From Malacoraja senta (lineage: Eukaryota), in contig CM075981.1 in NCBI GenBank assembly GCA_038087875.1, positions 930,001 to 994,000 on the forward strand: a stretch of DNA of 64,000 nt. Direction: 5' to 3'. A program made the position numbers and the translations under genes. Shown one piece after another: positions 9,905 to 40,155 of this stretch (position 1 is its first letter; each line of letters starts with the position of its first letter). The notes beneath the pieces were generated by a model. The model was not told the DNA's origin and made no database searches. It saw only the letters and a list, made by a program, of their open reading frames with translations.

Positions 9905-9924
9905 GTACGTTTTACATTTATACC

Positions 9925-12319: not shown

Positions 12320-12410
12320 TTACATTATATGGACGGTGGGACGCTGGCTGTACTTCGCTCTGCTTGGGATCTGCAGTATCTCAGTCTCATTGTTCACAAG
12401 TATAAGGAAG
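12320..12410 (+). CDS. Receptor copy 1, exon 4 (transmembrane, contains Arg) YIIWTVGRWLYFALLGICSISVSLFTSIRK
   Basis: tttgctcag| acceptor, phase 2 in. Hydrophobic segment. AAG|GTATGT donor, phase 0. Confidence 0.85.
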
Positions 12411-13313
12411 GTATGTTTTGCGGATATCATCAGAATCGCTGAATGCTTCCAAATGATCTCCATTAATACCTTCAAACATGCTGATAAAATAAAACAAACG
12501 AAAAGTGTTTAGAAAAGGTATTTCACAAATACAGGCCAAACCAATGCTCTACGAAGATGATATCAATAGGTCTTGACAAGATGTTTGTGTGCAGAATGAA
12601 CTGAAGTGTTTGACGTAGATGTTGTAGCGTCATTGAATCGGAGAAATACAGCACGGAAACAGGCCCTTTGGCCCATTGTGGCCACGCAGACCATCATATC
12701 TGAACCCCAGTTCCCTCCCTTGTACTTTCAGTTTGAAGAACGGTCCCGACCTGAAATGTCACCCATCCTTTTTCTCCAGAGATCTTGCCTGACTTGCTGG
12801 GTTACTCCAGCACTTTGTATCTATCAGGCCATTGATCACCCATACACATTAGTTCTATGTTATCCCATTCTCTCATTGCAACTCCCAACACACTAGGGGA
12901 AATTCACACTGGCCAATTAATTTGCAAAACCACAAGTCTTTGGGAGGTGGGAGGAAACTGGAGCTAGCAGTTTTATGTTTATATTTAAATTTATTTATTA
13001 TTGTTATGTCTATTTTCTTTTTTTATGTGCTGCATTGGCAATAAGCATTTCACTACACCAATTGGTGTATGTGACTAATAAAGAACCGTTGAGCCTTTGA
13101 GACCCACATGGCCACAGCGAGAACATGCAAACTCCACACAGATAGCACCAAAGTCAAAATCCAAGCAAATTCTTGGACACTGTGAGGTAGCAGCTCTATC
13201 CGCTGCATCACTGTGCCAATTGGAAGCAGAATTCTGTTGTGAGTGGCCTTGTGAAATAAAGCACAATTTCCCGAGTTAATGAATCTGATGACTTCAACAT
13301 TTTTTTTTTGCAG

Positions 13314-13349
13314 GGACCCAATGAACCGAAACCTCACAGCTTTCCGTAG
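13314..13349 (+). CDS. Receptor copy 1, exon 5 (short cytoplasmic tail) GPNEPKPHSFP*
   Basis: Strong acceptor (T)10-GCAG|. The phase-0 reading stops at TAG 13347-13349. The complete model is 206 aa from ATG 4421. Confidence 0.65.
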   Translation, partial: GPNEPKPHSFP

Positions 13350-14004
13350 AAGGCAGAATGAAGATCCACTGGTGATAGTGACTGAGAAACAACTCTCCAA
13401 CAAGACCAAATGATCATTATTATTTTGAATGAATGAATGAATGAATGAATGCTTTATTGTCACATGTGACAAGTCGCAGTGTAATTCTTTGCTTGCTAAC
13501 CCAAGGTATGAAAATAGTCACCCATAAAGGGCATTGACAAAGTGTTTTTCAATTTGCTTTCATAATAGACTGCACAGAATTAATGTTTCTTCTGCTAAAA
13601 CTATTAACTTAGTTCACTCAATATTCACTCAGTAAAGGTGCCATCAAAACAATGTTGCAAGCCTTTATAGCAATGACATTATTTTGTGTTGTGTAGCATG
13701 ATATTGCAGTCATGAGGAATAAATTGTATTAAATCCTGGAAATGCCTCATGGTTTTAACTGTGAAGAATATTTGGAAGAGGGAAACTATAAGCTATGACA
13801 TCCCATCAGATCAATTGTTCTGGAAGTACTTTTTCTCATGAGAACATCATTGTAATATACATTGCTGAGCAGTTTTCAAGTCACGTCTGGCTTATTCTTA
13901 TATGCATGTATGGTGAGGTGCAGGTACAATGAAAATCACACTTGTGGCAACGTCACAGGCCCATACACGTAGACACACAAAAATATAAATGATACATAGG
14001 GTGT

Positions 14005-14300
14005 TCAGCGGTGGAGTTGCTGCCTTCATTTCAGCGCCAGAGACGCGGGTTCGATCCTGACTACGGGTGCTGTCTGTACAGAGTTTTTATGTTCTCCCCA
14101 TGACCAAGTGGGTTTTCTCTGAGATCTTTGGTTTCTTCCCACACTCCAAAGACGTGCAGGTTTGTAGGTTAATTGGCTTCGGTAAAATTGTAAATTGACC
14201 CTAGTGTGTACAGGATAGTGCTGGTGAGAGGAGGGGATCACTGGTTAGCGTGAACTAGGTGGGCCAAAGGTCCCGTTTCCATGCTGTATCTCTAAACTAA
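14005..14300 (+). mobile_element. HE1/V-SINE-type SINE
   Basis: Head, V-domain and tail motifs. Confidence 0.8.
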
Positions 14301-15250
14301 ACTTAACTCAACTAAGATGTCCAATTCTACTGAATAAAAGTCACCATATCTCTCAAGCTAATTGGCACTTTACTCAAAGCAATGGGTTCCATCTGACAAT
14401 CTTGTTCTCTTTATTCATTGCATGTGAAAACAGTTGAGACTTAATTTTATTTCCTTGCCTCAACAGAACTTGAATAATCTTATGAAGGAATGATGAATGA
14501 ATAGGTTTATTGACCAAATATTCACATACAAGGAATTTGCCTTGCTCTGCTCGCAAGTGCAATGTGACATTAGGAATGACACCTAAAACATTAAACATTA
14601 ACAATAACATATATTTTTATAACAGAACCAATGACAACCACACTATCTCCAATTACAAGATTGATATCAACAGTACTCAAAACAAAATATAGTGCAAGAT
14701 ATATTCTTGTCATAACTTTTTTTACGCACTGGAACTGAATCCATGTCAAGGACATTTGGTCGATTTTGTTTTGTTAAACGCAAGTGTCAAGAGTTTGATT
14801 GTCATATGTAGCGACAGGGGGGCAATATAGTTCTTTGTTTCAGTAGCATAACGAGTCTGCGGATTTATAGAGTTATACAACACGGGAAACAGACCCTTCA
14901 GCCCAACTTGTCCAAGTCGACCAAGATGCCCCATCTACTCTAGTTTCCTCCTGCCAGCGTTTGGTCCATCTCCTTCTAAACCAGTCCTATCATGTAACTG
15001 TCCAAAATGCCTTTAAAATGTTTTTGTAGCACCTGCCTCAACTACCTCATCATTTAGCTCATTCCATACACCCACAACTCACTGCGTGAAAAAATGATGC
15101 CCCTCAGGAACCTATTAAATATTTTCGCTTTTACCTGAAGCCTTGTCCCCTGAGTCTTGATTCCCCTACTCTAGGTAAGAGACTTGTTTCTCTTGTTACC
15201 CTTGTTTCCCTTTCCCCTAATCTGTCTGAAGAAAGGTCTCGACTCTGAAA

Positions 15251-15636
15251 CATATAAGATTGTTAAGGGCTTGGACATGCTAGAGGCAGGAAAACATGTT
15301 CCCGATGTTGGGGGAGTCCAGAACCAGGGGCCACAGTTTAAGAATAAGGGGTAAGCCATTTAGAACAGAGAGGAGGAAACACTTTTTCTCACAGAGAGTG
15401 GTGAGGTCTGTGGAATTCTCTGCTTCAGAGGGCAGTGGAGGCAGGTTCTCTGGATACTTTCAAGAGAGAGCTAGATAGGCCTCTTAAAGATAGCAGAGTC
15501 AGGGGATATCGGGAGAAGGCAGGAATGGGGTACTGATTAGGGATGATCAGCCATGATCACATTGAATGGCGGTGCTGGCTCGAAGGGCCAAATGGCCTAC
15601 TCCTGCACCTATTGTCTATAGTATTGTCTATTGTCT
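15251..15636 (+). mobile_element. CR1 LINE 3' fragment
   Basis: MFPMLGESRTRGHSLRIRG...; 3'UTR gatgatcagccatgatcac...cctactcctgcacc. Copy at ~55822-56205. Confidence 0.9.
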
Positions 15637-16834
15637 AAAACATCACCTATTCCTTTTCTCCAGAGATGCTGCCTGATCCGATGAGTAACTCTAGATTTTT
15701 GTGTCTATCTTCAGTTTGAACGAGCATCTGCAGTTCCTTCCAACACAACCCTATCTATTCCCCTCATTGTGCTTGTAAACACAATGCACACAGTTAATAT
15801 ATAATGTCCAAATATGAATTAGTTGATAACTCCAATAAGGAACAATAAATAACATGTCCTTAGTCCAACCAAAGACTGTCCATACTTCATAGTTGAGGTT
15901 AGTGTGCAGTGTTCAAAAGCCTAATTGTTGCTGCTGAGAAGCTGTTTCTTGAACCTGGAGGTCACGGTTTTCAGGCTCCTGTACCTTCTTCCCAATGGCA
16001 AGAGTGAAATGAGAGCATGGTCAGAGTGTCATAGAGTGATACAGTGTGGAAACAGGCCCTTCGGCCCAACTTTATTCGGCAATAAAGTTCAGTCATCTTC
16101 CTCCTTTGTTCACCCGTGGTGGTCGGGGGGCCTTGAACCCTCAGCACTGCCTCTGCCGACGGGCCGATGTTCAAGCCCTCTCGTCGGGATGATGGAGACT
16201 CCAGCGTCGGGGGCGGAACGGAAACACTCCGCGGAATGGATTCTCCCGAATCGGCCTTTTCTAACTGGAGACCGCGGCTTCATGGTGTTAAAGTCCACAA
16301 GCCCCACGGTCGAAACATTAAAACATACATTTTAGAAACAGTAAAAATAACAAAAATGTTGAAATAACACACAGGATTTGGGCGAGGCTGCCATCTCGGC
16401 GCCACCCAGTGACGCATCTATCTTCTCTATGGATTTTGTGTCTATCTTCGATTAAACCAGCATCTGCAGTTCTTTCCTACACAACAAAAGACATTCCCTG
16501 TTTGCCGTTTCGTCATTATTCAAGATCCAGGGGCCGTCATCTGTAAACTCCCAGGAGGGGTAAGAACAGAATTCGGCCAAACAGCATTGTGATCCCGGCA
16601 CTGATCCCTTTGGTACATCATTTAGGGCAGCACGGTGGTACAGATGTAGAATGGCTGCCTTACAACGCCAGGGACCCGGGTTCGATCATGACCACGGGGG
16701 CCTTGTCTGTCTGGAGTTTGTACATTCTCCCCGTGAACTGCGTGGGTTTTTCTCTTAAAACTTCGGTTTCCTCCCACACTCCAAAAACGTACAGGTTTAC
16801 AGGTTAATTGGCTTGGTATAAATGTAAAACGTAC

Positions 16835-17160
16835 CTTCAGATACTTGGAGATGAACGTTAAACAATGGATCAACGCCAGGTGCAGCAATTCCACAGCTGT
16901 ACCATCCTGTATCTCCAGAGTGAAGATGCTCCACAGTCACAGAAAATATCCTTGTGTCGGGTTATCTGTGATTGACACTCTTCCGCTCCGTCCGTGTTGC
17001 CCATTTGTCTTCACTACAATTGAGCACGCGATATCCCACCCGTGACACCAGTATTTAATGCGTGAGCGGTACCGTGCTTTATAGTGACAATCGATTGTGA
17101 TATCTTTTCTCACAACTCCTCCTACAGATTTCTTTCCCCACAGGGACAGTCCACCTGAAA
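16835..17160 (-). pseudogene. Orphan inverted Ig V exon (V2) with a 1-nt deletion
   Basis: Paralog of 9578-9904 with both splice sites intact. It is 326 nt, with a frameshift near 16949 (ggatatttt vs ggaatattt) that could be a consensus error. No - strand leader or TM exon found. Confidence 0.8.
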
Positions 17161-17211
17161 CTGAGAGGAAAAAATCTTCAGAAAATGTACAGGACAAATC
17201 TACTTAACACA

Positions 17212-19769
17212 AATCTACTAGCCCCGCCGACCCCGACTCCACTGCCCGAGGACTCCTACCGTCGGGTCCGCCGACCCTCGCCACTGAACCTCCCCTCCAG
17301 CACCCCGCAGCCGTCGCCTCACCTGCAGACTGGTCTGTGTACTGGGCCTGAAGCCTCCACGCTGCTCACTCCACCCTCCTGGGTTTCACTCCACTGGGTC
17401 CTAGCGCTAGTCTGCCTATACCTCAGTGTTAGTTCCACTGATACTTCCCCATCCTTCTCCAACTATGGGACCCCTTCTCTTCCCCACCCACACTACAGCC
17501 CTCTCACCCCCCCCACCCCCTCACCACCCACCACCCCCCCCACCACCCACCACCCCCCCACCACACATCGCCTCGTCCCATTCCACCCACCTGCCTTCCT
17601 CCGGCCCCAACCCTCATCCCTGCCGGGTGTTCACCATCCCCCCCGACCTCCCCCTCTCCGACATCGAACGGTCCGTCCACAGCAGAGGTCTTACCTTTGT
17701 CCCCCTCCGTCCCCACCTCAATGAGTTCCGCGCCCTCCATGACTTGGAACGCTTCTACCGTCGCCTTCGCCTCACAGCGCACTTCCATGGGAAGGAGTCC
17801 TCGCCCCCCACTGATGACCCCTTTTCCTGGCTCCAACACACCCCCCTCCTCGTGGAACCCCCCCTCGTAGCCTTCCGGCTTTAGAACTCTTCATCAAAAA
17901 CTTGCCGCAGTGACATCAACCGACTCAACTTCTCCACTCCCCGTCTCACTCCAATCTCTCCCCCCCTGAACGCACTGCCATCGACTCACTCCGCAACAAC
18001 CTAGATTGGGTTATCAAACCCGCCGACAAGGGAGGTGTCGTGGTAGTCTGGCGCGTCGATCTCTTACAAAGCTGAGGCCACGCGCCAACTCTCGGACACC
18101 TCCTCCTACATACCCCTGACCATGACCCCCACTGACGAGCACCAGGCCACCATCTCCAGCACCATCACCGACTTCATCCACTCCCACGCCCTGCCCGACC
18201 GAGCCTCCAACCTCATCGTTCACCAGCCCCGCAAGGCCCAATTTTACCTTCTCCCCAAAATCCACAAACCTGACTGTCCCGGTAGACCCATTGTCTCTGC
18301 CTATTCGTGCCCCACCGAACTCATCTCCGCCTACCTCGACTCCATCCTATCCCCTTGGTTAAATCCCTCCCTACCTATGTTCAAGACACCTCTGACACTC
18401 TCCGTCATCTGCGCGCATTCCACTCTCTAGGCCCTCACCCCCTCATCTTCACCATGGACGTCCAGTCATTGTACACCTCCATCCCCCACCAGGATGGTCT
18501 CGAAGCCCTCCGTTTTTTCCTCGACCGAAGAAGCAACCTACACCCGGCCACTGACACCCTCCTCCCACTAGCGGAGCTGGTCCTTACCCTCAATAACTTC
18601 TCATTTGACTCCTCCCATTTCCTCCAAATACAAGGCGTAGCTATGGGCACACGAATGGGCCCCAGGTACGCCTGCCTGTTTGTCGGGTACGTAGAACAAT
18701 CCTTGTTCAATACGTACCAGGGCCCCATCCCCGAATTCTACCTCCGCTACACCGATGACTGTTTTTGGTGCCACCTCCTGCACCCACACACAACTGACTG
18801 ACTTCATCCGCTTCACCACCAACTTCCATCCGGCACTCAAATACACCTGGACCATTTCCGACACTTCCCTACCATTCCTTGACCTCACTATCTCCATCGC
18901 AGGTGATAGACTTCATACCGACATCCACTACAAACCTACTGACTTACATGGCTTTCTGGACTACACTTTCTTCCCACCCTGCTTCCTGTAAGGACTCCAT
19001 CCCCACTCTCAATTCCTCCGTCTACGCCGCATCTGCTCCCAGGATGAGGCGTTTCCACACCAGGGCATCCGAAATGTCCTCATTCTTCAGGGAACGGGGG
19101 TTCCCCTCCTCCACCATAGATGAGGCTCGCACCAGGGTCTCTGCCATACCCCGTAACACTGCTCTCTCTCCCCATCCCCCCACTCACAACAAGGGCAGGG
19201 TCCCCCTAGTCCTCACCTTTCATCCCACCAGCCGTCACATAAAACAAGTGATCCTCCGTCAGTTTTGCCACCTCCAACGTGACCCCACCACTCGCCACAT
19301 CTTCCCATCTCCCCATATGTCTGCCTTCCGCAAAGACCACCTCCTCCGTAACTCCCTTGTCAATTCTCTTCCCTCCCGTACCACCCCCTCCCCGGGTACT
19401 TTCCCTTGCAACCGCAAGAGATGCAACACTTGTCCCTTCACCTCCCCCCTCGATTCCATTCAAGGACTCAAGCAGTCGTTCCAGGTGCGACAGAGGTTCA
19501 CCTGCATCTCCTCCAACCTCATCCATTGCATCCGCTGCTCTAGATGTCAGCTGATCTACATCGGTGAGACCAAGCGGAGGCTTTGCGATCGTTTCGCCGA
19601 ACACCTCCGGTCGGTCCGCAATAACCTACCTGACCTCCCGGCTCAGAACTTCAACTCCCCCTCCCATTCTGTATCTGACCTCTCTGTCCTGGGTCTCCTC
19701 CATGGCCACAGCGAGCAACACCGGAAATTGGAGGAAATGCACCGCATATTCCGCTTGGGCAGTCTACAT
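17212..19769 (+). mobile_element. Penelope-like element in the inverted arm, frameshifted, 3' end replaced by CR1
   Basis: RT and GIY-YIG fragments in ORFs 18122-19850. Same insertion point relative to the V exon (tacttaacaca at 17201-17211). Confidence 0.93.
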
Positions 19770-22700
19770 AGATACATAGATAGATACATAGAAAATAGGT
19801 GCAGGAGTAGGCCATTCGGCCCTTCGAGCCTGCACCGCCATTCAATATGATCATGGCTGATCATCCAACTCAGTATCCCGTACCTGCCTTCTCTCCATAC
19901 CCCCTGATCCCCTTAGCCACAAGGGCCACATCTAACTCCCTCTTAAATATAGCCAATGAACTGGTCTCAACTACCCTCTGTGGCAGAGAGTTCCAGAGAT
20001 TCACCACTCTCTGTGTGAAAAAGTTTTTCCTCATCTCGGTCCTAAAGGATTTCCCCCTTATCCTTAAGCTGTGACCCCTAGTCCTGGTCTTCCCCAACAT
20101 CGGGAACAATCTTCCTGCATCTAGCCTGTCCAACCCCATAAGAATTTTGTACGTTTCTATAAGATCCCCTCTCAATCTCCTAAATTCTAGCGAGTATAAG
20201 CCAAGTCTATCCAGTCTTTCTTCATATGAAAGTCCTGACATCCCAGGAATCAGTCTGGTGAACCTTCTCTCCACTCCCTCTATGGCTATAATGTCCTTCC
20301 TCAGATTTGGAGACCAAAACTGTATGCAATGCTCCAGGTGTGGTCTCACCAAGACCCTGTACAACTGCAGTAGAACCTCCCTGCTCCTATACTCAAATCC
20401 TCTTGCTATGAAGGCCAACATACCATTCGCTTTCTTCACTGCCTGCTGCACCTGCATGCCTACTTTCAATGACTGGTGTACCATGACACCCAGGTCTCGC
20501 TGCATCTCCCCATTTCCTAATCGGCCACCATTTAGATAATAGTCTGCCTTCCCGTTTTTGCCACCAAAGTGGATAACCTCACATTTATCCACATTATACT
20601 GCATCTGCCAAACATTTGCCCACTCACCCAGCCTATCCAAGTCACCTTGCAGTCTCCTAGCATCCTCCTCACAGCTAACACTGCCCCCCAGCTTAGTGTC
20701 ATCCGCAAACTTGGCGATGTTGCTTTCAATTCCCTCGTCCAGATCATTAATATAAATTGTAAATAGCTGGGGTCCCAGCACTGAGCCTTGCGGTACCCCA
20801 CTAGTCACTGCCTGCCATTGTGAAAAGGACCCGTTTACTCCTACTCTTTGCTTCCTGTTTGCCAGCCAGTTCTCTATCCACATCAATACTGAACCCCCAA
20901 TACCGTGTGATTTAAGTTTGTATCCTAATCCCTTATGCGGTACCTTGTCGAAAGCCTTCTGAAAGTCCAGATACAACACATCCATTGGTTCTCCCCTATC
21001 CACTCTACTAGTTACATCCTCGAAAAATTCTATAAGATTCGTCAGACACGATTTACCTTTCGTAAATCCATGCTGATTTTGTCCAATGATTTCACCACTT
21101 TCCAAATGTGCTGCTATCCCATCTTTAATAACTGACTCTAGCAGTTTCCCCACTACCGATGTTAGACTAACTGGTCTGTAATTCCCCGTTTTCTCTCTCC
21201 CTCCCTTCTTAAAAAGTGGGGTTACGTTTGCTACCCTCCAATCCTCAGGAACTACTCCAGAATCTAAAGAGTTTTGAAAAATTATCACTAATGCATCCAC
21301 TATTTCTGGAGCTACTTCCTTAAGTACTCTGGGATGCAGCCTATCTGGCCCTGGTGATTTATCGGCCTTTAATCCATTCAATTTACCCAACACCACTTCC
21401 CGACTAACCTGGATTTCACTCAGTTCCTCCATCTCCTTTGACCCGCGGCCCCCTGCTATTTCCAGCAGATTATTTATGTCTTCCTTAGTGAAGACGGAAC
21501 CAAAGTAGTTATTCAATTGGTCCGCCATATCCTTGTTCCCCATGATCAATTCACCTGTTTCTGACTGCAAGGGACCTACATTTGTTTTAACTAATCTCTT
21601 TCTCTTCACACATCTATAAAAACTTTTGCAGTCAGTTTTTATGTTCCCTGCCAGTTTCCTTTCATAATCCATTTTCCCTTTCCTAATTAAGCCCTTTGTC
21701 CTCCTCTGCTGGTCTCTGAATTTTTCCCAGTCCTCTGGTATGCTGCTTTTTCTGGCTAATTTGTACGCATCATCTTTTGCTTTGATACTATCCCTGATTT
21801 CCCTTGTTATCCACGGATGCACTACCTTCCCTGATTTATTCTTTTGCCAAACTGGGATGAACAATTTTTGTAGTTCATCCATGCAGTCTTTAAATGCCTT
21901 CCATTGCATATCCACCATCAACCCTTTTAGAACTAATTGCCAGTGAATCTTGGCCAATTCACGTCTCATACCCTCAAAGTTACCTTTCTTTAAGTTCAGA
22001 ACCGTTGTTTCTGAATTAACAATGTCACTCTCCATCATAATGAAGAACTCAACCATATTATGGTCACTCTTGCCCAAGGGGGCACGCACAACAAGACTGC
22101 TAACTAACCCTTCCTCATTACTCAATACCCAGTCTAGAATAGCCTGCTCTCTCGTTGGTTCCTCTACATGTTGGTTTAGATAACTATCCTACATACATTC
22201 CAAGAAATCCTCTTCCTCAGCACACCTGCCAATTTGATTCACCCAATCTATATGTGGATTGAAGTCACCCATTATAACTGTTTTGCCTTTGTTGCACGCA
22301 TTTCTAATTTCCTGTTTGATGCCATCCCCAACTTCACTACTACTGCTAGGTGGCCTGTATACAACACCTACCAGCGTTTTCTGCCCCTTAGTGTTTCGCA
22401 GCTCTACCCATCCTCCAAGCTAATGTCCTTCCTTTCCACTGCGTTAATCTCTCTAACCAGCAACGCTACCCCACCTCCTTTTCCTTTCTCTCTATCCCTC
22501 CTGAATATTGAATATCCCTGGATGTTCAGCTCCCAGCCTTGGTCACCCTGGAGCCATGTTTCCGTGATCCCAACTATATCATAATCATTAATTGCTATCT
22601 GCACGTTCAACTCATCCACCTTATTACGAATGCTCCTTGCATTCAGACACAAAGCCTTCAGGCTTGTTTTTACAACGCTCTTACCCCTTATACAATTATG

Positions 22701-24233
22701 TTGAAAAGTGGCTCTTTTTGATTTTTGCCCTGGATTTGTCTGCCTGCCACTTTTACTTTTCACCTTGCTACCTATTGCTTCCGCCCGCATTTTACACCCC
22801 TCTGTTTCTCTGCTCACCCATTTAAGAACCCCACCACCTCTTATTCTCTGTTTATTAATGTTTTCTTCTTTCCCCCCTACATGTTGGGTCTGAGTGCTTT
22901 CCTTCTCTGCCTCCTGCCTCACACACTGTCTAATAGCATTCTCTATTTGAGTCCCTCCCCCCAACCATTCTACTTTAAAGACTCCCCAGTAGCCTTTGCA
23001 GATCTCCTCGCCAGGATATCGGTCCCCCTCAGGTTCAAGTGCAACCCATCCTTTTTGTACAGGTCGAACCTTCCACAAAAGAGGTCCCAATGATCCAGAA
23101 ATTTGAATCCCTGCCTTCTGCACCAGTCCTTCAGCCACGCATTTATCCTCCACCTCGCTCCTTTCCTACTCTCACTGTCGCGTGGCACAGGCAGTAATCC
23201 CGAGATTGTTACCTTTGCTGTCCTTCTCTTTAACTCCCCTCCTAACTCCCTAAATTCTCCTTTCAGGACCTCTTCTCTTTTTTTAACCTATGTCATTGGT
23301 ACCTATATGTACCACGACCTCGGGCTCCTCTCCCTGCCCTTTCAGGATATCTTGGACACGTTGAGACACATCACAGACCCTGGCACCAGGGAGGCAAACT
23401 ACCATCCGGGTCTCCCGACTGCGTCCACAGAATCGCCTGTCTGACCCCCTAACTATAGAGTCCCCTATTAGTATTGCCCTCCTCTTCTTTTCCTTACCCT
23501 TCTGAGCAACAGGGCCGGTCTCTATACCGGAGGCCCGGCCGTTGTCGCTACCCCCAGGTAGGCTGTCCACCCCAACAGTGCTCAAACAGGAGTACGTATT
23601 GTCAAGGTGTACAGCCACCGGGGTACTCTCTCGTCCCTGCCTGTGCCCCTTGCCTCTCTCAACCGTGATCCACTTGCCTGCCTCCTGTGGTATTGGAGTG
23701 ACCACATCCCTGTAACTCTTCTCAATGAGTTCCTCGCTCTCCCTGACCAGACGGAGGTCATCGAGCTGCTGCTCCAGGTTCCTAATACGGTCCATTAGGA
23801 GCCCCATCTCGATACACCTGGCGCAGATGTGGACGTCTGGAGGGCTATCAGACTCCATGACTTCCCACATCTGACATCCAGAACAGTAAACTGCCCTGGC
23901 CCTCATACTCCCCTTACCTAGGATACAATACAAAACAAACTGCTACAATACAAAACAAACTGCTACAATACAAAACAAACTGCTACAATACAAAACAAAC
24001 TGCTACAATACAGTACAATCAGCAGGGATCTGACTCCCAATCAGCTGCTCCCTCTTGTCTGCTTCCACCAATCAGCGGCTTCCTCAAGCCCACTTGTTTT
24101 TGAAGTGGAACTTGGAACGTTGCCGATTTTGGCACTCTGTAAGGAACAAGCAAGCCCCGCGCTCCACTTTATCCCCTACCGCTCAGGTGTAGCTCCTCCC
24201 TCTGCGACAGCTCCAACGGCTCTCGGGCCTCTG
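19770..24233 (-). mobile_element. Near full-length CR1 LINE (ORF1 zinc finger/SGNH esterase; ORF2 APE endonuclease + RT)
   Basis: ORF1 23283-23933 and 22970-23188 (CSGC..CARC, LIGDSIVR, HIGTND, DGLHLN). ORF2 begins LNARSIRNK; 751-aa RT portion at 19870-22125 (GVPQGSVLGP, FADD). Disrupted by a stop near 22190 and a 13-nt deletion near 22410. Confidence 0.95.
23924..24013. repeat. 20-bp tandem repeat (tacaatacaaaacaaactgc) x4.5 in the CR1 5' region
   Basis: Four exact units plus a partial unit read directly. Confidence 0.95.
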
Positions 24234-24235
24234 TT

Positions 24236-24510
24236 GGATTAATTATATATGTTGTATTAATTATATATGACATTAATTTCATATCCACTAAAAAATAATC
24301 AATTCTTGAATATGTTTTATGTACCGAAGAGTAAAACGAATATTCCCTTCCTGCTGGATTAGCAGATCTCCATACATCTGTTATATTAGTATTTTTTATA
24401 TATGTATTTAGAAGTTCACTAGTCTTAGATTTTAAATTACTCCTTCTTTGTTTTACTGATTTGTCTAAGTATGGATCTAAAACACAGTTAAAATCCCCAC
24501 CTATTATCAC
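24236..24510 (-). mobile_element. L1/Tx1-type endonuclease fragment (element A, 3' part)
   Basis: IIGGDFNCVLD...DVWR...YSFYS..HKTYSRIDYFLV. Confidence 0.9.
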
Positions 24511-24522
24511 ATTTTTATAATT

Positions 24523-26992
24523 TTTTTTTTTTTTTTTTTTTAAATTTTTATTTATTAGAAGTACATTACATCACAGCCACATACATTAATACTCGTCATT
24601 TATATCTTCTTACAATTAATGTACTCCCTTTATTTTTTTTTTACGCTAAAGAAAGAAAAGATTGAAAGAGAGAAGAAAGTGAAGGAAAAAGTGCAAGTGT
24701 AGAAAAGTGTAGAAAATGTAACAACAAACAAAAAAAAAAAAAGGACGAGGACCCTATGAAAGCGAAATTAAAGACAAAAAAAAAAAAGGAGTTAAGAAAT
24801 AGGCCCTAAGAAAAGAAAAGAGAGAGAGAAAAAAAGAAAAACAAATGTTTTTTTTTTTTGAGCATCACGTAAATAGGACATACCAACTCTTCAACTATCA
24901 TCCCCCCTTACCCGACCTCAATTTTTTATTTTTTTAAAGTACTTTTGCACCCTATGTTTGTAATAATTCTATAAATGCAGACCACGTCAGGTGGAAGTGA
25001 TCTGGTTTACCTGCTAGGAGGAGTCTTATCTCTTCAAGGTGTAGTGTTTCAAACATATTTGAAATCCACATATTTATAGTTGGTATTGGAGCCTTCTTCC
25101 AAAATTTTAGAATTAGCTTTTTTCCAGTTATTAACCCATAATCCATTAATTTCTTTTGAAACACATTTAGTTCTGGATCATCTTCCGTTATTCCGAAGAT
25201 AATCCATTCTGCTTTGGGTATCAGTCTTGTTTTAAATAACTTTGTAAAGATTTCAAAAATTTCATTCCAAAATTTTTGAATTTTTCGTACAGAAGACAAA
25301 TGAGTGCGCTATAGTTGCTTCTTGGGATTGACATTTATCACAAATAGATGATACGTTTGGGAAAATTTTATGAATTTTAGTTTTCGAATAATATAATCTA
25401 TGTAAAATTTTAAATTGTATTAAAGTGTGTCTTACATTAATCGAGCATTTATGTACTTTTAATAAGTATTCATTCCAACTTTCCTTTGAAATTTTAATGG
25501 CTAACTCTTGTTCCCAGTCTCTTCTGATACCCTCCGTAGATGGTATTTGTACATTTAAGATAATATTGTACAAATATGATATTAAGTTTGCTGATTCCGC
25601 TTTTGTCTGCATTGCCTCGTCCAGTACATCTGCTGGGTTATTATGATGATCTTTTATATATTTTTTCAAATAGTCGCATATTTGAAAGTATTTAAAATAT
25701 TGATTATTTCCGAGTTTATATTTTATTTGTAATTGTTGAAATGAAAGTAATTTTCCAGTTTCATACAAGTCACCAAGCGTTTTAATTCCTAGTCTATCCC
25801 ATTGTGTATAAGCTTTATCTATAATAGAAGGACTAAACGAAGGGTTATTGACTATAGGTAATAAAAGTGATAAGTTTCTTAATTTTAAATTTTGTTTTAT
25901 TTGTTTCCAAATACGGATTGTACTATGAATAATTGGGTTCTTATTATAGTTTATGTTATTCAATTTCATTGGAGAGAGGAGGATCGCTCCAATGTTTCTA
26001 GAGGAGCAATCCTCTTTCTCCATTACAATCCAGTCTACTTGCTGGGCGGAGTTATCCATCAGTTGAATCATGTTTTTAATATTTACTGACCAATAATAAT
26101 ACATAAAATTGGGTAGTGCTAGACCCCCCAATACTTTAGATTTATTCAGATGGGTTTTTTGTATTCTATGTGATTTATAGTCCCATATAAAATTAGTGAT
26201 ATCTGAGTCGAGTTTTTTAAAAAACTTCTTAGGTAAGTATATAGGAATTGATTGAAATAGGTATAAAATTTGTGGTAAAAAGATCATTTTTATTGCGTTT
26301 ATTCGGCCTATTAAAGACATCGGAAGCGTTTTCCAGAATTTAATTAATGTATTCAGTTTATTAAGTAGGGGGTCAAAATTTGCCCTGAGCATACCTTGAT
26401 ATGCTCTGGTAATTTCGATTCCCAAATATTTAAATTTTTCTGTAGCTATTTTAAAAGGGAATTTTAAAAGATGTGTTGAATCTTTCGGTTTTATTGACAT
26501 AATTTCACTTTTATTCCAATTTATTCTATATCCAGAAAAAGATCCGAAGTCTTCAATTAAATTTAATATATTTGGTATAGTGATTTGAGGTTTTGTGATA
26601 TACAATAATATATCATCCGCGTATAAAGATATTTTATTATATGAGTCTTTAGTATTATATCCATGAATATCAGGGTGTATTCTAATTTTTTCTGCTAGCG
26701 GTTCAATAATGAGAGCAAACAGCTGTGGTGATAATGAGCATCCTTGTCTATTTCCCCTTGATAGTTGAAATTTCGAGGATAATATGTTATTAGTAAGTAT
26801 TCTAGCTGTAGGTTTGTTATATAGTAACTTAATCCATAAAATAAAATTCTCTCCCAGTTGAAATTTTTGTAATACTTTATCCATATAATTCCATTCTACT
26901 TGATCAAATGCTTTTTCAGCATCCAGCGAAATAATTGATAATTCTTGATCTTCAGATTTGTGTGAGTGCATTATGTTGAGTAGACGTCTCAT
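24523..26992 (-). mobile_element. 5'-truncated L1/Tx1-type LINE (element B) with poly(A), inserted into element A
   Basis: RT motifs SLDAEKAFD, RQGCSLSP, LYADD. Poly(T) on + at 24521-24542. TSD atttttataatt at 24511-24522 and 26993-27004. Confidence 0.92.
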
Positions 26993-27004
26993 ATTTTTAT
27001 AATT

Positions 27005-27167
27005 AAACTCTAATATTATATCTATAATTTTATCAAAAAATTGAGGGTTATCAAAATTCGGAGCATAAATATTTACCATAGTTATTGGGGTAGCATAAAT
27101 TTCTCCCGAAACTATGATATACCTTCCCTCTTTATCTGATATAGTATTCTTTAATTTGAAAGAATTA
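27005..27167 (-). mobile_element. L1/Tx1-type endonuclease fragment (element A, 5' part)
   Basis: SDKEGRYIIVSG...VNIYAPN; continues at 24510 as YKN-VIIGGDFN once element B is removed. Confidence 0.85.
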
Positions 27168-28860
27168 TGCATTAATCGAACATTTGTGTATATATATAAA
27201 ATTATTTTCCCATGTAACCTTCGTAATTTTGAACATTAATTCCCGTTCCCACTCTTCTCTAAGTACCTCTGTCGATGATAGGTCTATATTTAAAATACTA
27301 TTATATAAATATGATATTAATTTCTGTGTCAGCCTTAATATTCATTGCTTCTTCCAGTAAATCAAAAGTTATTTTTTGATATCCTTGTATGTATTTCTTC
27401 ATGAAATCGCAAATCTGAAGATATTTAACATTTTGGTTATTTTTCAGTTTAAATTTTAATTGTAATTGTTGGAATGATAATAGATTTCCCATTTCATACA
27501 TATCACTGGTCCTTTTAATTCCCATTCTTTCCCATTGGTTATATGTTTTATCAATAAGAGATGGTTTAAATAAAGGATTATTCGCTATTGACATTAACAA
27601 TGATAAATTTCTTCATTTTAGAGATAATTTTATTTGTTCCCAAATTCTTATTGTATCGTGTATAATTGGGTTCTTCTTATATATTGTGTTGTTCAGTTTT
27701 TTCGGGGAGAAGAGGATCGTTCCTATATTACAAGGAAAATAATCCTCTTTCTCCATTTTTATCCATTCTGTCTGTTGGGTAGAACTGTCCAACCAGTAAA
27801 TTATATTCTTAATATGCACTGCCCAATAGTAATACAAAAAATTCAGGACTGAAAGTCCCCCGACATCTTTTGGTTTACATAAGTATTTTTTTTTTATTCT
27901 GTGTGATCTATAATCCCAAATAAAATTAGTAATATTAGAGTCTAATTTAAAAAATATATATTTTGATATATATAATGGTATAGATTGAAATAGGTATAAT
28001 AATTGTGGTAGAAAGATCATTTTTATAGCGTTTATTCTATAGCGTATATAGCGTAATTACACCTATTAATGATAATGGGTTTTCCAAAATTTAATCAGCG
28101 TATTGAGTTTATTTAATAAAGGCATAAAATTAGCATTGAATAATGCTTTATATTTTCTAGTAATTTGAATACCCAAATATTTAAATTTTTCTGTTACAAT
28201 TTTAAAGGGGAACTTCAATAAGTGTGTAGATTCTTGAGGTTTTAACATCATGATTTCACTTTTATTCCAGTTTATTCTATATCCAGAAAAGGACCCAAAT
28301 TCCTCTATTAAATTTAATAAATTTGGTATGCTCGTTTGTGAATTTGTAATATATAGAAGTATATCGTCTGCATATAATGAAATTTTATTATTTGAGTCCC
28401 TAGTATTGTAACCCTGGATATTCGGATGAATTCTTATACTTTCAGCCAAGGGCTCTATCATAAGGGCAAATAGCAGGGGTGATAACGCACATCCCTGCCT
28501 ATTGCCCCTTGATAATTGAAATTTTGGAGATAACATATTATTGGTTAACATTCTTGCCATCGGTTTATCATATAATAATTTTACCGAAGCAATAAAATTC
28601 TTTCCCATATTAAATTTTTGCAGTACTTTATATAAATACTGCCACTCTACCTGATCAAATGCTTTCTCTGCGTCCAGAGAAACAATTGATATATCTTCTT
28701 CCTCCGTTTTATGTGAGTACATTATATTAAACAGGCGTCTCAAATTATTAAATGAATGTCCGTTTGATCAGGGTTTATCAATTTACTAATATATTTGCTT
28801 AATCTTCTTGCTAAAGTCTTTGCTAAAATGTTCTGGTCTGTATTTAAAAGTGATATAGCT
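27168..28860 (-). mobile_element. Degenerate L1/Tx1-type RT region (element C)
   Basis: ORFs 28066-28743, 27613-28020 and 27301-27600 are colinear paralogs of element B with frameshifts. Confidence 0.9.
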
Positions 28861-33010: not shown

Positions 33011-33220
33011 AGAAGGAACTGCAGATGCTGGAAAATCAAAGGTAGACAAAAATGTTGGTGAAACTCAGCGGGTGAGGCAGCATCTATAGAGCGAAGGAAA
33101 TAGGCGACGTTTCGGGTCGAGACCCTTCTTCAGTCTGAAGAAGGGTTTAGGCCCAAAACGTTGCCTATTTCCTTTGCTGCGTCACCCGCTGAGTTTCTCC
33201 AGCATTTTTGTCTACCTTTG
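33011..33220. mobile_element. Fold-back pLTR mini-element with head-to-head hammerhead motifs
   Basis: Central palindrome acccttcttcag-t-ctgaagaagggt (33122-33146). Flanks ttaaatggtta and ttaattggtta are TSD-like with 1 mismatch. Confidence 0.8.
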
Positions 33221-33918
33221 TTAATTGGTTATATGGTTAACTCATTGGTTATATGGTTAACTATGTTACATGTGACAATAAACTAAACTAACATACTAGG
33301 TTATTTGACTTCTGTAAATTGGCTCTAGTGTGTAAGATAGAACTAGTGTATGGGTGATTGTTGGTCGGCACAGACTCGGTGGGCCAAAGGGCCTGTTTCC
33401 GCACTGTAACTCTAAACATAAAAGTAAAAGTAGAACTAAAACTGACACAAAAATTAGTTTCTAGCTTAGCATAGATTCTAATAAATATATAAGGTTTGTG
33501 TACAACACATGGCCTGGAGAGAATGGATGTGAAGAGGATGTTTCCACTAGGAGATTTAGGACCAGAGGCCACAGCCCCAGAATAAAAGGACGTAATTTAG
33601 AAAGGGGATGAGGAGGAATTTCTTTAGTCAGAGGATGGTGAATCTGTGGAATTCATTGCCACAGAAGGCTGTGGAGGCCAAATCAATGAATATTTTTAAT
33701 GCGGAAATTGATAGATTCTTGATTAGTACGGATGCCAGAGTTTATGGGAAGAAGGGAGGAGAAAAGGGTTGAGAGGGAAAGATAGGTCAGCCATGATTGA
33801 ATGGTGGAGTAGACTGGATGGGCCAAATGGGCTAATTCTGCTCCTATCACGTGAACTTATGAACATGAGTTTAAATATGTTTCTGATGTGGTCCTTTCAA
33901 TAATGATGTATTTTCTAG

Positions 33919-33965
33919 AATCGAAAGGCAAGAGATCTCACAGAGAAGATAACAATGAAACCCAG
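33919..33965 (+). CDS. Candidate 47-nt cytoplasmic exon A (x)SKGKRSHREDNNETQ
   Basis: ttttctag| acceptor, CAG|GTAAGG donor, phase 1 to 0. Paralogous in size, sequence and downstream intron to 39415-39461. Confidence 0.6.
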
Positions 33966-34127
33966 GTAAGGATGTGAAGTGTGAATTGTCTGAATGTTTG
34001 AGAATATATAAACTAATATTATGTAGCATAACACAGGCCATTCAGCCCCACTAGTCCACTTCAACGTTAATACTAAACACCAATCGCTATGCATCCTTCT
34101 TCATCAAACCCCATCAACATCAACAAG

Positions 34128-34320
34128 GGTGGGACAGCTGGTAGAGCTGCTGCCTCACAGCGCCAGAGACCCAGGTTCGATCCTGACCTCGGGTGCTGTC
34201 TGTGTGCAGTCTTTACATTCTCCCTGCGACCACGTTTCCTCCAGGTGCTCTGGTTTCCACCCACATCCCAAAGACGTGTGGGTTTGTAGGTTAATTGGCT
34301 TCTGCAAATTGCCCCGAGCT
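34128..34320 (+). mobile_element. HE1/V-SINE-type SINE
   Basis: Head and V-domain motifs. Confidence 0.8.
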
Positions 34321-35991: not shown

Positions 35992-36026
35992 GGGTGATGT
36001 TTCGGGTCGAGACCCTTCTTCAGACT
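35992..36026 (-). ncRNA. Minimal hammerhead motif in a pLTR element (~35905-36026)
   Basis: AGU-CUGAAGA-A-GGGU CUCG ACCC-GAAAC-AUC-ACCC. Confidence 0.58.
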
Positions 36027-36216
36027 ATTCTATATTGCCCCTAAGTATTCAAAATTTATCACCTCATTTCTCTGCAATAAAAGAATCTGCCATATGTCTA
36101 GGAAGGAATTGCAGATGCTGGTTTCACCTAGACCACAGCTAACAAATGTTTTTATCCAGCCCACAGCTAACATGGTTTTAACCAAAACCACAGCTAACAA
36201 TAGTTTTTTTCATCTA

Positions 36217-37220
36217 GACCCCAGCTATTTACAATTATATTAATGAGCTGGATGAGGGAATTGAAAGCAACATCTCCAAGTTTGCGGATGACACTAAGGT
36301 GGGGGGCAGTGTTAGCTGTGAGGAGGGTGCTAGGAGACTGCAAGGTGACTTGGATAGGCTGGGTGAGTGGGCAAATGTTTGGCAGATGCAGTATAATGTG
36401 GATAAATGTGAGGTTATCCACTTTGGTGGCAAAAACGGGAAGGCAGACTATTATCTAAATGGTGGCCGATTAGGAAATGGGGTGATGCAGCGAGACCTGG
36501 GTGTCATGGTACACCAGTCATTGAAAGTAGGCATGCAGGTGCAGCAGGCAGTGAAGAAAGCGAATGGTATGTTGGCTTTCATAGCAAGAGGATTTGAGTA
36601 TAGGAGCAGGGAGGTTCTACTGCAGTTGTACAGGGTCTTGGTGAGACCACACCTGGAGTATTGCGTACAGTTTTGGTCTCCAAATCTGAGGAAGGACATT
36701 ATAGCCATAGAGGGAGTGCTGAGAAGGTTCACCAGACTGATTCCTGGGATGTCAGGACTTTCATATGAAGAAAGACTGGATAGACTTGGCTTATACTCGC
36801 TAGAATTTAGGAGATTGAGAGGGGATCTTATAGAAACGTACAAAATTCTTATGGGGTTGGACAGGCTAGATGCAGGAAGATTGTTCCCGATGTTGGGGAA
36901 GTCCAGGACAAGGGGTCACAGCTTAAGGATAAGGGGGAAATCCTTTAAGACCGAGATGAGGAAAAACTTTTTCACACAGAGAGTGGTGAATCTCTGGAAC
37001 TCTCTGCCACAGAGGGTAGTTGAGGCCAGTTCATTGGCTATATTTAAGAGGGAGTTAGATGTGGCCCTTGTGGCTAAGGGGATCAGGGGGTATGGAGAGA
37101 AGGCAGGTACGGAATACTGAGTTGGATGATCAGCCATGATCATATTGAATGGCGGTGCAGGCTCGAAGGGCCGAATGGCCTACTCCTGCACCTATTTTCT
37201 ATGTATCTATGTATCTATTC
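36217..37220 (+). mobile_element. 5'-truncated CR1 LINE nested in a pLTR element
   Basis: ORF 36299-37120 is nearly identical to the C-terminus of the CR1 at 19870-22125; (TATC/TATG) tail. Confidence 0.93.
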
Positions 37221-38599
37221 ATTTGTTCTATATCTCTCTATATCACCGTCTATATCTCTCGTTTCCCTTTCCCCTGACTCTCAGTCTGAAGGGTCTCAAC
37301 CCAAAATATAATCTATTCCTTTTCTCCACAGATGCTGTCTGACCCGCTGAATAACTCCAGCTTTTTATGTCTACCTTCTGCCATATGTCTGTCCACTCCG
37401 CCACCAAGTCTATGTACTCCCGAAACTCAACAACATCCTGGATTGCAGTTCACAATGCTATTTCGTTTTGCATCATCAGCACATTTCAAACTTGTGACTT
37501 GCAAGTCCAAGTCTAGGTCACTTATATCGATTTTTAAAAAGCCAACACCAGTCGATCTATTTACCTTCGTCCTGCTCAATAAACAGCCAATCACCCATAT
37601 TCCTCTGTAGTAGTGAGTCTGGGTCCCCTTTACCCTGACTCTGTCGGATGAAGGGTCTCGACCTAAAACATCACCTATTCCTTTTCTCCAGAGATGCTGT
37701 CTGACCCACTGTTACCCCAGTTTTCAGTGTCTTTCCTCTGTCGTATGATGCTTAATCATCTTCAAGGTTTCAAGGTCAGTTTACTGTCACATGTACCAAT
37801 TAAGGTACAGTGAAATTTGAGTTACCATACAGCCATACTAAGTGAAAAGCAACAAGACTCACAACCATATAAAAGTTAACATCAACATCCATCACAGTGG
37901 ATTCCATATTCCTCACTGTGATGGAAGGCAATAAAGTTCAAGCTTCTTCCTCTTTGTTCTCCCGTGGTCGGGGCAGTCAAACCATCCACAGTCGGGGCAA
38001 TCAAAGCCTCCGCAGCCGGTGATCGAAGTCCCCGTTGAGGTGATCGAAACTCCTGCATAGGGGCGGTTGAAACTCTCTCCGCTGCATGGATCTCCCGAGC
38101 CCATGGGACTCTTACCAGAGACCGCGGGCTTCACGATGTTAAAGTCCACAGGCCCGATCCATTTCAGATCCAAGACCTATTACAACAGGGTAAGAGGGAA
38201 AAGAGGAGGGAACCTCATTGAAACATCAAATAGTGAACGGCCTGGATACAGTGGATGTAGAATGGATGTTTCCACTAGTGGGACAGTCTAGGACCAGAGG
38301 TCATAACCTCAGAATTAAAGTACATTCCTTTAGGATGGAGATGAGGAAGAATTTCTTTTGTCAGAGGGTGTGGAATTTTTTGCCACAGAAGGCCGTGGAG
38401 GCCGTCAATAGATATTTTTAAGGCATAGATGGATAGATAGGTTCTTGATTAGTACTGGATTGTGGAGAGAAGGCATGAGAAAGAGATTAGGAGGGAGAGA
38501 TAGATCAGCCATGATTGAATGGCGGAGTAGATGGATGGGCCGAATAGCATAATTCTGCTCCTATCACTTATGAGCTGATGAAAACCTGCTGGAGCAGAT

Positions 38600-38995
38600 A
38601 AGGTAAGGACACAAAATGGTGGAGTAACTCAGCGGAACAAGCAGCATCTCTGGAGAGAAGGAACGTTTCAGGTCAAGACCCTTTTTCAGACTGATGTCAG
38701 GGAGTAGGTAGTACACAGATAAAATGTAGTCGGAGACAGTAAGACTGGTCAAAGAATTGGGAATGGGGAGGGGATGGAGAGAGAGGGAAACCAATGGCTA
38801 CTTGAAGTTAGAGAAGTCAATGTTCATACCACTGGGGTGTAATTGCCCAAGTGAAATATGAGGTGCTGTTCCTCCAAATTGCGCTGGGCCTCACTCTGAC
38901 AATGGAGGAGGCCCAGGACAGAAAGGTTAGTGTGGGAATGAGAGTGGTAGTTAAAGTGTTGAGCAACCGGGAGATCAGGTAGGTTTAGGCAGCTT
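38600..38995 (-). mobile_element. Penelope 3' fragment (GIY-YIG C-terminus + pLTR), older subfamily
   Basis: LPDLPVAQHFN.HSHS...LSVLGLLHCQSE.QR.LEEQHLIFHLG. Confidence 0.85.
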
Positions 38996-39414
38996 TCGGG
39001 AGGGATGGGTAGAGCACAGGGAATATGATCCACTGTGAACAATATGTACAGTAACCAGAAAACAGGGCAGATTCTTGCTCCGTTCGTGCAAATATACTGC
39101 AGTACTTTTGGGGTTCTCCTAAATATAAGGTCTTGCACACAACACGTAGATGTTTCAGTGTGTTGGAAGGAACTGCAGATGCTGGTTTATACTGAAGATA
39201 AACACAAAATGCTCTAGCAATTCAGCGGGTCAGGGTGCATCACTGCCGAAAAGGAATAGTTGACGTTTCGAGTCGAGACCCTTCTTCAGACTGAGAGTCA
39301 GGGGAAAGGGAAACGAGCGATATAGAAGGTACAAAGAACAAATGAATGAAATATATGAATGAATGATGTTCAAACCTGTTCCTGATATGGCTCTATCGAC
39401 AACATATTTTCCAG

Positions 39415-39461
39415 AATCCAATTGCAATACATCACAAGGTGAAGACAACAATGAAATCCAG
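39415..39461 (+). CDS. Candidate 47-nt cytoplasmic exon B (x)SNCNTSQGEDNNEIQ
   Basis: ttttccag| acceptor, CAG|GTAAAA donor, phase 1 to 0, matching the phase-0 acceptor at 39880. Confidence 0.65.
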
Positions 39462-39574
39462 GTAAAAATGTGAAATATAAATTCTCTGAGTGATGAAGAA
39501 TATATAATATTGAATTATCTGTGTTTACACAGGCCATTTACCAACACCAGTCCACTCCAGCTAAGAGATCCATC

Positions 39575-39745
39575 GCAGAAACAGGATCTTCGGCCCACAG
39601 TGTCCACGCCGACCGGTGACCCCCGCACACTAACACTCTCCTACACACACTAGGGGCAATTTGCAATTATGCCAAACCAATTAACCTACAAACCTGTTGT
39701 AGACGCTGTCAGGCAGCAACTCTACCGCTGCTCCACCGTGCTGTG
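39575..39745 (-). mobile_element. HE1/V-SINE-type SINE (internally deleted)
   Basis: Reverse complement of the tail and head motifs. Confidence 0.7.
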
Positions 39746-39879
39746 CTATCTTTGTGTTGTAAACAGCAGCCATGGCTTGTTCTGTACACTGAACAGTTCG
39801 AGACCTACTTTGTAATAGACATCTGTTGAGGACCTTTCAAATCTATTAGGTCGTAAAATTTGATTTTGTTACATTTTAG

Positions 39880-40155
39880 GAAATAGCAGTGTTGGAAGGA
39901 AACCACGTTGATGCAAATCTGCAGCAACTTGCAAAGATCAGGGCAGATGACCATTTGGATAACAATGAAGGTGAACGCACGTATGCAGTGGTGAATTGTC
40001 AAAGGAAGTCGAGATCAAGGCAACATGTGGCTGAAAACGCTGTCGTCTACGCAGATGTCAATTTTCATCGCAACTACCCAAAGGGCACTCGGAAACCCCA
40101 CTCTCCTGGGACTCCAGAGAACCCCGAATCAATCTATGCCTCTGTTGTTTCTTAG
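39880..40155 (+). CDS. Terminal cytoplasmic exon of an inhibitory receptor with ITIMs
   Basis: acattttag| acceptor and 91 open codons EIAVLEG...RTYAVV...VVYADV...SIYASVVS*. VVYADV and SIYASV fit the ITIM consensus (I/L/V/S)xYxx(L/V/I). Confidence 0.8.
   Translation, partial: EIAVLEGNHVDANLQQLAKIRADDHLDNNEGERTYAVVNCQRKSRSRQHVAENAVVYADVNFHRNYPKGTRKPHSPGTPENPESIYASVVS

Follow-up and report, generated by a model that had tools for sequence, protein, structure and literature searches.

Exons coding for a cytoplasmic tail with immunoreceptor tyrosine-based inhibitory motifs (ITIMs) lie downstream of an activating-type receptor gene in 64,000 nucleotides (nt) of the Malacoraja senta genome (GenBank assembly GCA_038087875.1, contig CM075981.1, positions 930,001 to 994,000 of the forward strand). 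This whole stretch, numbered from its first letter, is referred to as the window. It is part of a skate cluster of MDIRs (modular domain immune-type receptors), which are CD300/pIgR-like, and the locus is, on its sequence, a further member of this known family. We consider it probable that the ITIM exon and the 47-nt exon in front of it (47b) are the orphaned 3' end of an MDIR3-type inhibitory gene, and not part of the activating gene. An earlier note on this DNA had suggested that one locus switches between an activating and an inhibitory form, by splicing an internal donor after 12399, within the transmembrane (TM) exon of the activating gene, to these distant exons; an orphaned 3' half left by duplication was its alternative. 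It is the alternative that gains from our analysis: in two other skates, Amblyraja radiata and Leucoraja erinacea, the 3' ends of complete inhibitory genes are collinear with the region, but only as far as 38160, where the TM exon has not yet been reached. The switch itself fared poorly, as its donor is weak, a related mRNA (L001) retains the site, and none of 26 homologous TM segments of the same type (VGRW) is joined to the 47-nt/ITIM module.

Tail exons, probably orphaned

Two 47-nt exons (47a and 47b) and the ITIM exon at 39880-40155 are intact, as the earlier note had claimed. They have AG acceptors and an open frame, and the 47-nt exons have CAG|GTAA donors (the bar marks the splice junction). 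A 47-nt juxtamembrane exon together with an ITIM terminal exon is a feature of the MDIR3 subtype. The encoded tail is 79% identical to MDIR3 of Rostroraja eglanteria (P0199), 82-85% identical to four A. radiata proteins and 70-77% identical to tails of L. erinacea and Rhinoraja longicauda. In total, nine proteins with a matching tail were found, each of which possesses a dedicated uncharged TM close to IYIVASGVTVLLLILIIAFFWYRKRKTK. Seven of the nine conform to I[IN]YIV[AV]SGVTVLLLILIIAFFWYRKRKTK, and close variants occur in two R. longicauda proteins. In the nine proteins, the dedicated TM ends in phase 1; a single segment of 16 residues (xSK...NNETQ) comes next, with the ITIM exon after it. 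If both 47-nt exons of the window were included in a single transcript, the frame would be broken.

The surroundings of the tail exons point in the same direction. In MDIR3-type genes of A. radiata a distance of 1.8-2.2 kb separates the TM exon from the 47-nt exon downstream of it, and the intron between the 47-nt and ITIM exons measures 410-430 nt; the corresponding intron behind 47b has 418 nt. Window positions 38160-40316 are collinear with A. radiata locus L004 (84680-86801; 87.6% identity over 2.2 kb) and also with locus L003, and the remnant is likewise collinear with L. erinacea locus L005 (243-3174). In both species collinearity runs past the ITIM exon, through intergenic DNA, into the leader of the next gene. 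The order of ITIM exon, about 5 kb and next leader is considered ancestral because it is found in A. radiata and L. erinacea too. At its other end, homology starts at 38160; the TM exon of the orthologues would lie 590-760 nt upstream of this point. The window thus holds MDIR3-type tail exons without the leader, immunoglobulin (Ig) exons, stalk and TM of their own gene.

We wondered if a dedicated TM exon might nevertheless be present. The earlier note had found neither a V exon nor a TM exon on the + strand between 13.4 and 50 kb, and for 13.4-39.4 kb this held in tblastn and blastn searches and in a hydropathy scan. Using TM segments of four homologues as tblastn queries, no uncharged TM exon was detected on either strand of 13.35-39.4 kb, nor was a dedicated TM exon found in the interval of 24-34 kb, where the note had accepted that one would speak against the switch. 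A six-frame Kyte-Doolittle scan of 13.35-39.4 kb returned merely chance hydrophobic stretches inside sequence of long and short interspersed elements (LINEs and SINEs). DNA of the A. radiata TM exon had no blastn match anywhere in the window at word size 7. The window therefore holds no complete MDIR3-type gene, in which an uncharged TM exon with a phase-1 donor would be expected 1.8-2.2 kb before the 47-nt exon.

Such an arrangement could be the outcome of a tandem duplication, or of an unequal crossover, one end of which fell in the intron between the TM and 47-nt exons; 47b and the ITIM exon would be left behind. The break would be at about 38160, adjoining repeat DNA, and the leader, Ig, stalk and uncharged TM exons would have been lost. 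Exon 47a would be an older and further decayed relic of the same kind. With its immediate flanks it shares 85% mean column identity with 47b, and the wider relic region shares 72-76% in blastn; tblastn revealed neither an ITIM exon nor a tail remnant behind it. Exon anatomy, homology, synteny, the missing TM exon and the quality of the donor are observed here; besides the duplication mechanism, we infer that an adaptor is used by the activating product and that transcripts of a long form are lacking.

Several observations weigh against an orphaned 3' end. All three exons retain open frames and good splice sites, and the tail, in which about eight of 91 residues show lineage-specific changes, is not obviously more diverged than its functional orthologues. 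Nucleotide identity to A. radiata is 91-92% in the ITIM exon vs 88-89% in its flanks. The exons are on the same strand as an apparently active gene, 21-27 kb downstream of it, and two in-frame routes lead to them. Moreover, the duplication junction and the parental gene would have to lie outside the window, in a second copy of 23.4-40.8 kb or in upstream DNA. Intact frames and low divergence suggest that orphaning was recent or that some constraint persists. Degradation of the first of three ITIMs (ITYAVV to RTYAVV), with VVYADV and SIYASV kept, speaks for an orphaned end, as may the ratio of nonsynonymous to synonymous substitution rates (dN/dS) of the ITIM exon against A. radiata, which is 0.7-1.0 from 22-24 differences.

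Possible splicing from the activating gene to the tail exons

In-frame connection of the activating gene to the tail exons can be drawn in two ways. The first uses the canonical donor at 12410, which is strong and whose phase 0 fits the phase-0 acceptor of the ITIM exon; the acceptors of the orphan exons are good as well. Joining 12410 directly to 39880 skips both 47-nt exons and is in frame (284 amino acids, aa), and passage through one 47-nt exon causes a frameshift with a stop after about 17 extra residues. Read-through transcripts might be spliced in this manner as low-level by-products with little or no function. For this, however, transcription would have to pass the poly(A) site and splicing to leave out the proximal terminal exon, and for the in-frame version two well-formed 47-nt exons would have to be omitted as well. 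No such protein was found in the searched collections, and we regard chimeras of this sort as very unlikely. Since the route from 12410 to 39880 is in frame, the internal donor is not the sole in-frame route.

It is improbable, too, that the orphan ITIM exons are starting to be captured by the activating gene, either via 12399 or via the join of 12410 to 39880. One V domain would then be shared by an activating form of the DAP12/FcRgamma type and by an ITIM-bearing form. If true, this would be a rare case, an early stage of an activating receptor turning dual or inhibitory.

The second route is the proposed switch. Transcription would read past the poly(A) site near 13.7 kb, the acceptor at 13314 would be skipped, a 21.5-kb intron would be removed, and 12399 would be spliced via 47a or 47b to the ITIM exon. 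The internal donor is present as described in the earlier note (AA|GTATAA after 12399, phase 1): its GT occupies 12400-12401, and the exon piece 12320-12399 leaves phase 1. The claim that 12399 can be joined to 33919 in frame with the ITIM exon was also confirmed; the frame remains open over 296 aa with either 33919 or 39415 as the intermediate acceptor, and the product would combine the V domain of the short form and an Arg-containing TM with two ITIMs, as a dual or inhibitory isoform comparable to ITIM+ NKp44-1. The K/R-rich juxtamembrane sequence KSKGKR would come after the TM, the downstream exons have kept their acceptors and donors, and NKp44 provides a charged-TM receptor with ITIM+ and ITIM- splice isoforms (PMC5078064).

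Against these points stands the quality of the donor. In the site (CAA|GTATAA), positions -1, +4 and +5 are occupied by A, T and A, and its competitor AAG|GTATGT lies 11 nt downstream. Of 22 donors mapped in annotated MDIR genes from four skate loci, every one carries G at -1, and at +5 a G is found in 17. The sequence of L001 reads ...CACAAGTATAAGGAAG|GGACCC, which means that the internal GT was retained in the message and a donor of the 12410 type was used. Nor does conservation speak for the site. GT is also present at this position in A. radiata and in the related mRNA because it falls within a Ser codon, that of TSIRK, which is conserved. In the window GT has a frequency of 0.057, and some five positions of phase 1 are available from the hydrophobic core to the canonical donor. 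By chance, about 25% of such exons should thus have a GT in phase, and the coincidence is of little weight alone.

The identical letters CAA|GTATAA that seem to act as exon-3 donor in this gene had been advanced in favour of the switch. The identity of letters is correct; the phase is not, as the exon-3 junction (11113|11114) is of phase 2. The exon-3 orthologue in A. radiata is CAG|GTATAA and the exon of the related mRNA ends in ...AACAG, hence the exon-3 donor of the window represents lineage-specific G-to-A weakening rather than a habit of the family, and the resemblance is a lineage-specific coincidence. We also considered the internal GT as a relic of the phase-1 donor of an ancestral inhibitory TM exon. 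This was rejected, as the alignment puts the canonical donor at that place; it indicates that the difference in donor phase between the two TM types (0 vs 1) is due to indels inside the exon.

Proteins tell the same story. No protein joining a VGRW TM to the 47-nt/ITIM module was present among 204 relatives and in the searched protein collections. In the 26 VGRW-TM proteins the sole match to the ITIM pattern is SQYRGL, in two Mobula models. No short open reading frame (ORF) carrying the ITIM tail was found in protein databases. The would-be 21.5-kb intron consists largely of LINEs and an inverted repeat, which A. radiata lacks at this position. Taking these points together, we judge the switch to be very unlikely. 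The in-phase GT after 12399 is most likely a weak site that arose by chance, and the predicted normal product uses 12410 and ends at 13349.

Tandem array

Self-comparison of the window revealed a tandem repeat with a unit of about 40.6 kb (1-23417 vs 40769-64000, 98.7% identity), and self-blast located an inverted duplicate of 6976-10654 within each unit. The non-coding DNA of the window is about 90% identical to both A. radiata and L. erinacea, which are at roughly equal distance. Their orthologous clusters contain MDIR3-type and activating genes in the same orientation. Clustered multigene organization with activating and inhibitory members, as typical of MDIR/CD300-like receptors, is thus found here.

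According to self-comparison, the window begins about 600 nt past the position where the ITIM exon of a preceding unit is expected. This would agree with a complete inhibitory gene that starts upstream of the window and has the activating gene nested in a giant intron between its TM and 47-nt exons, but such an intron would exceed 39 kb and enclose a whole gene on the same strand, vs 1.8-2.2 kb in A. radiata, and if the array extends upstream, a nearer 47/ITIM pair would serve instead; we find this explanation extremely improbable. An assembly artefact, in which the tandem repeat and the juxtaposition at about 38160 stem from mis-joined, near-identical paralogous segments, is suggested by the repeat-rich nature of the region, with duplicates of 96-99% identity in both orientations, but is most unlikely given that the window has no gaps, that the copies differ consistently at many positions and that the order from ITIM exon to next leader is the same in A. 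radiata and L. erinacea.

The activating gene

Exon junctions of the activating gene were fixed by homology and by L001, a spliced transcript contig of a related skate (Logan run SRR13269331) that encodes P0186. The architecture of the short form and every junction agree with L001/P0186 and with A. radiata P0044. The TM exon starts at 12320 (CAG|TTACAT) and not at 12300 as first thought, and the last exon of the short form was likewise corrected, to 13314-13349. Its 3' untranslated region extends to about 13724 with AATAAA at 13718; positions 614-1028 of L001 align to 13312-13724 with 92.8% identity. In amino acids, the TM exon is 93% identical to P0044 and to P0186. As P0186 derives from a transcript, one skate at least expresses a gene built in this way.

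To place the V exon, 1.84 billion representative proteins were searched and 2389 relatives were returned. The best of them are skate and ray MDIR, pIgR-like and CMRF35-like proteins (60-72% identity), and Rostroraja eglanteria relatives carry the UniRef names MDIR2, MDIR3 and MDIR5. MDIRs are described as relatives of CD300, TREM and pIgR that form a multigene family with both activating and inhibitory receptors (PMC3031540). The TM arginine is invariant in 26 of 26 homologous VGRW TMs, all of which are short-tailed. Because an Arg-containing TM and short, ITIM-free tails prevail across the homologues, the gene is assigned to activating-type MDIRs. Its product would signal via an adaptor with an immunoreceptor tyrosine-based activation motif (ITAM), recruited by the conserved arginine.

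Each tandem copy encodes an intact protein of 204 aa. Seven residues differ between the copies, all within the V domain. Of 321 nt of the V exon, 10 differ (8 nonsynonymous, all in the N-terminal half), and the stalk, TM and last exons are identical. The pattern in the V exon points to the ligand-binding face as a target of diversifying selection or gene conversion.

The donor of exon 3 also deserves mention. It is CAA|GTATAA in both copies (11105-11145 in unit 1; 51678-51718 in unit 2) vs CAG|GTATAA in A. radiata. Reading through it yields ...DNKYNFHLLKF and a stop, and P0047, a RefSeq protein of 169 aa from L. erinacea, has the same C-terminus, KYNFHLLKF followed by stop. It is therefore plausible that V and stalk make up a soluble isoform. 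Splicing to the membrane form may be inefficient in this species.

Origin of the activating gene

Orthologous DNA, about 88-94% identical, was identified in A. radiata (locus L002, CM021389.1, 33.90-33.96 Mb; P0044, RefSeq 'CXADR-like membrane protein') and in L. erinacea (locus L005, CM054030.1, 29.57-29.59 Mb; P0047, 'CMRF35-like molecule 1'). Leader, V, stalk, TM and last exons are shared; for leader, V and stalk exons, nucleotide identity is about 90% to both loci. In both, an MDIR3-type gene ends just upstream of the leader of the activating gene. Directly 3' of the stalk, however, three exons that seem to be unannotated are present in both loci (Table 1): one for an uncharged TM, one of 47 nt, and one with ITIMs, whose tail type is a different one. 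The A. radiata exons, together with leader, V and stalk, make up an intact inhibitory ORF of 291 aa, and those of L. erinacea are 89-94% identical to them at the protein level. Ahead of its activating TM, A. radiata has in addition exons for V2, C2 and stalk2.

The 27-kb block that holds these exons (L002 17193-44434) is missing from the window, where the stalk is followed at once by the activating TM exon. Judged by these alignments, an inhibitory 5' half and an activating 3' module have been fused in the window gene. The join of stalk to activating TM works because TM exons of both types have phase-2 acceptors. The break of the block loss falls at window positions 11984-12002, beside a CR1-like LINE fragment.

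Gene models of these species are a separate matter. In the RefSeq model P0044, the leader and V in question are connected to the activating module further downstream. P0044 and P0047 may be incomplete or mis-joined, or both tail types may be made. If the P0044 model is real, A. radiata may have a "one V, two tails" gene, with a dedicated TM exon per tail. In P0187, a related activating gene of R. longicauda (locus L006, CM130186.1, 32412984-32441741), a stalk of the stalk2 type directly precedes the VGRW TM; with this fourth skate, the known arrangements of the modules come to three.

Mobile elements and V-exon copies

Much of the window is occupied by retroelements (Table 1). The unit 2 copy of the Penelope-like element (47266-50101) contains the Pfam domains RVT_1 and GIY-YIG. 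The place of the two LINEs is marked by a jump in collinearity with A. radiata, where L002 48372 to 49475 corresponds to window 16072 to 28858. Inverted duplicates downstream of each activating gene carry V copies without leader, stalk or TM exon. The inverted V copy differs from the + strand V by 16 nonsynonymous changes vs 1 synonymous change and may be an orphan exon or a gene-conversion donor.

Table 1. Features of the window and inhibitory exons at the orthologous loci of two other skates
Feature	Position	Strand	Remarks
Leader exon, unit 1	4421-4478	+	donor CTG|GTAAGT, phase 1; tblastn to residues 1-19 of P0044/P0047; 94% to L001
Penelope-like retroelement, intron 1	6690-9528	-	reverse transcriptase (RT) and GIY-YIG; 55 nt upstream of V acceptor; absent at A. 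radiata and L. erinacea loci
V-set Ig exon, unit 1	9584-9904	+	phase 1 to phase 1; Pfam V-set, E=2.8e-12; 64-72% identity to skate MDIR/CMRF35-like proteins
Stalk exon (exon 3)	11005-11113	+	donor CAA|GTATAA, phase 2; matches P0047/P0186 stalk; junction fixed by L001
Activating-type TM exon (YIIWTVGRWLYFALLGICSISVSLFTSIRK)	12320-12410	+	phase-2 acceptor CAG|TTACAT; canonical donor AAG|GTATGT, phase 0; L001 junctions
Internal candidate donor ACAA|GTATAA	12396-12405	+	exon end 12399, phase 1, after ...TTCACAA
Last coding exon, short form (GPNEPKPHSFP and stop)	13314-13349	+	tblastn to P0044 C-terminus
Inverted duplicate of Penelope-like element and V exon, unit 1	16078-19769	-	V copy 16835-17154 (1-nt gap); 96.5% identity
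Two LINE elements	19870-28743	-	RT and endonuclease ORFs (Pfam RVT_1, Exo_endo_phos); absent at A. radiata position
Relic copy of 47-nt-exon region	33511-34063	+	holds 47a; no ITIM exon behind
Exon 47a (xSKGKRSHREDNNETQ)	33919-33965	+	AG acceptor, CAG|GTAA donor, frame intact
3' remnant, probably of MDIR3-type inhibitory gene	38160-40316	+	partial intron, 47b, 418-nt intron, ITIM exon, start of 3' flank
Exon 47b	39415-39461	+	AG acceptor, CAG|GTAA donor
ITIM exon	39880-40155	+	open 91-codon frame to TAG; VVYADV and SIYASV; phase-0 acceptor
Intergenic DNA before leader of next tandem unit	40311-45323	+	order as downstream of MDIR3-type genes in A. radiata and L. erinacea
Leader exon, unit 2	44996-45053	+	
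V-set Ig exon, unit 2	50157-50477	+	10 nt differences from unit 1
Inverted duplicate, unit 2	56654-60338	-	intact V copy 57407-57727, Pfam V-set
Inhibitory TM, 47-nt and ITIM exons, A. radiata L002	19000-19088, 22170-22216, 22817-23092		unannotated-looking
Inhibitory TM, 47-nt and ITIM exons, L. erinacea L005	18825-18905, 19775-19819, 20423-20680		unannotated-looking

Significance and comparison with known systems

If the tail exons are orphans, the switch is not a feature of this locus, which still shows modular rebuilding of paired immune receptors. Compared with the two other skates, leader, V and stalk have lost an inhibitory TM/ITIM module and gained an activating TM, and a neighbour has left its tail exons behind. 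The donor of the activating TM exon is of phase 0 vs phase 1 in inhibitory ones, and therefore the join of activating TM to ITIM tail fails. The arrangement is also a trap for annotation: gene predictors may wrongly fuse the tail exons to the upstream gene.

In paired families (CD300, KIR, LILR, teleost NITR/LITR), near-identical ectodomains are combined with ITIM tails or with short tails behind a charged TM, and activating forms arise from inhibitory ones by recombination. An activating/inhibitory pair side by side is exemplified by P0009, from a related ray or skate. In principle the window does not differ from these families; what it displays is the debris of recombination, namely orphan tail exons and orphan V exons.

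KIR2DL4 is a precedent for a receptor with a charged TM that also carries an ITIM. The same is true for NKp44 (NCR2), in which, as described in PMC5078064, alternative splicing decides on the presence of the ITIM. In NKp44, however, adjacent exons of one gene are involved and the isoforms are documented by transcripts, whereas the ITIM exons of the window, which probably come from another gene, are separated from the activating TM by over 21 kb and by a poly(A) site.

The clearnose skate, Rostroraja (Raja) eglanteria, provides one of the closest known systems with its MDIR1-5 (Cannon et al. 2006, Immunogenetics 58:362, cited in PMC3031540). Where the window gene has a single V and a short stalk, several Ig domains are present in MDIR3 and MDIR5, and the MDIR3-type tail exons of the window differ from MDIR3 in being devoid of every upstream exon of their own gene. 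On the other hand, R. eglanteria MDIRs have the same CD300/pIgR-like V-set, include activating as well as inhibitory members and, in MDIR3, possess an ITIM tail 79% identical to that of the window. The VGRW type of TM is shared by MDIR5 (P0153) and the window gene.

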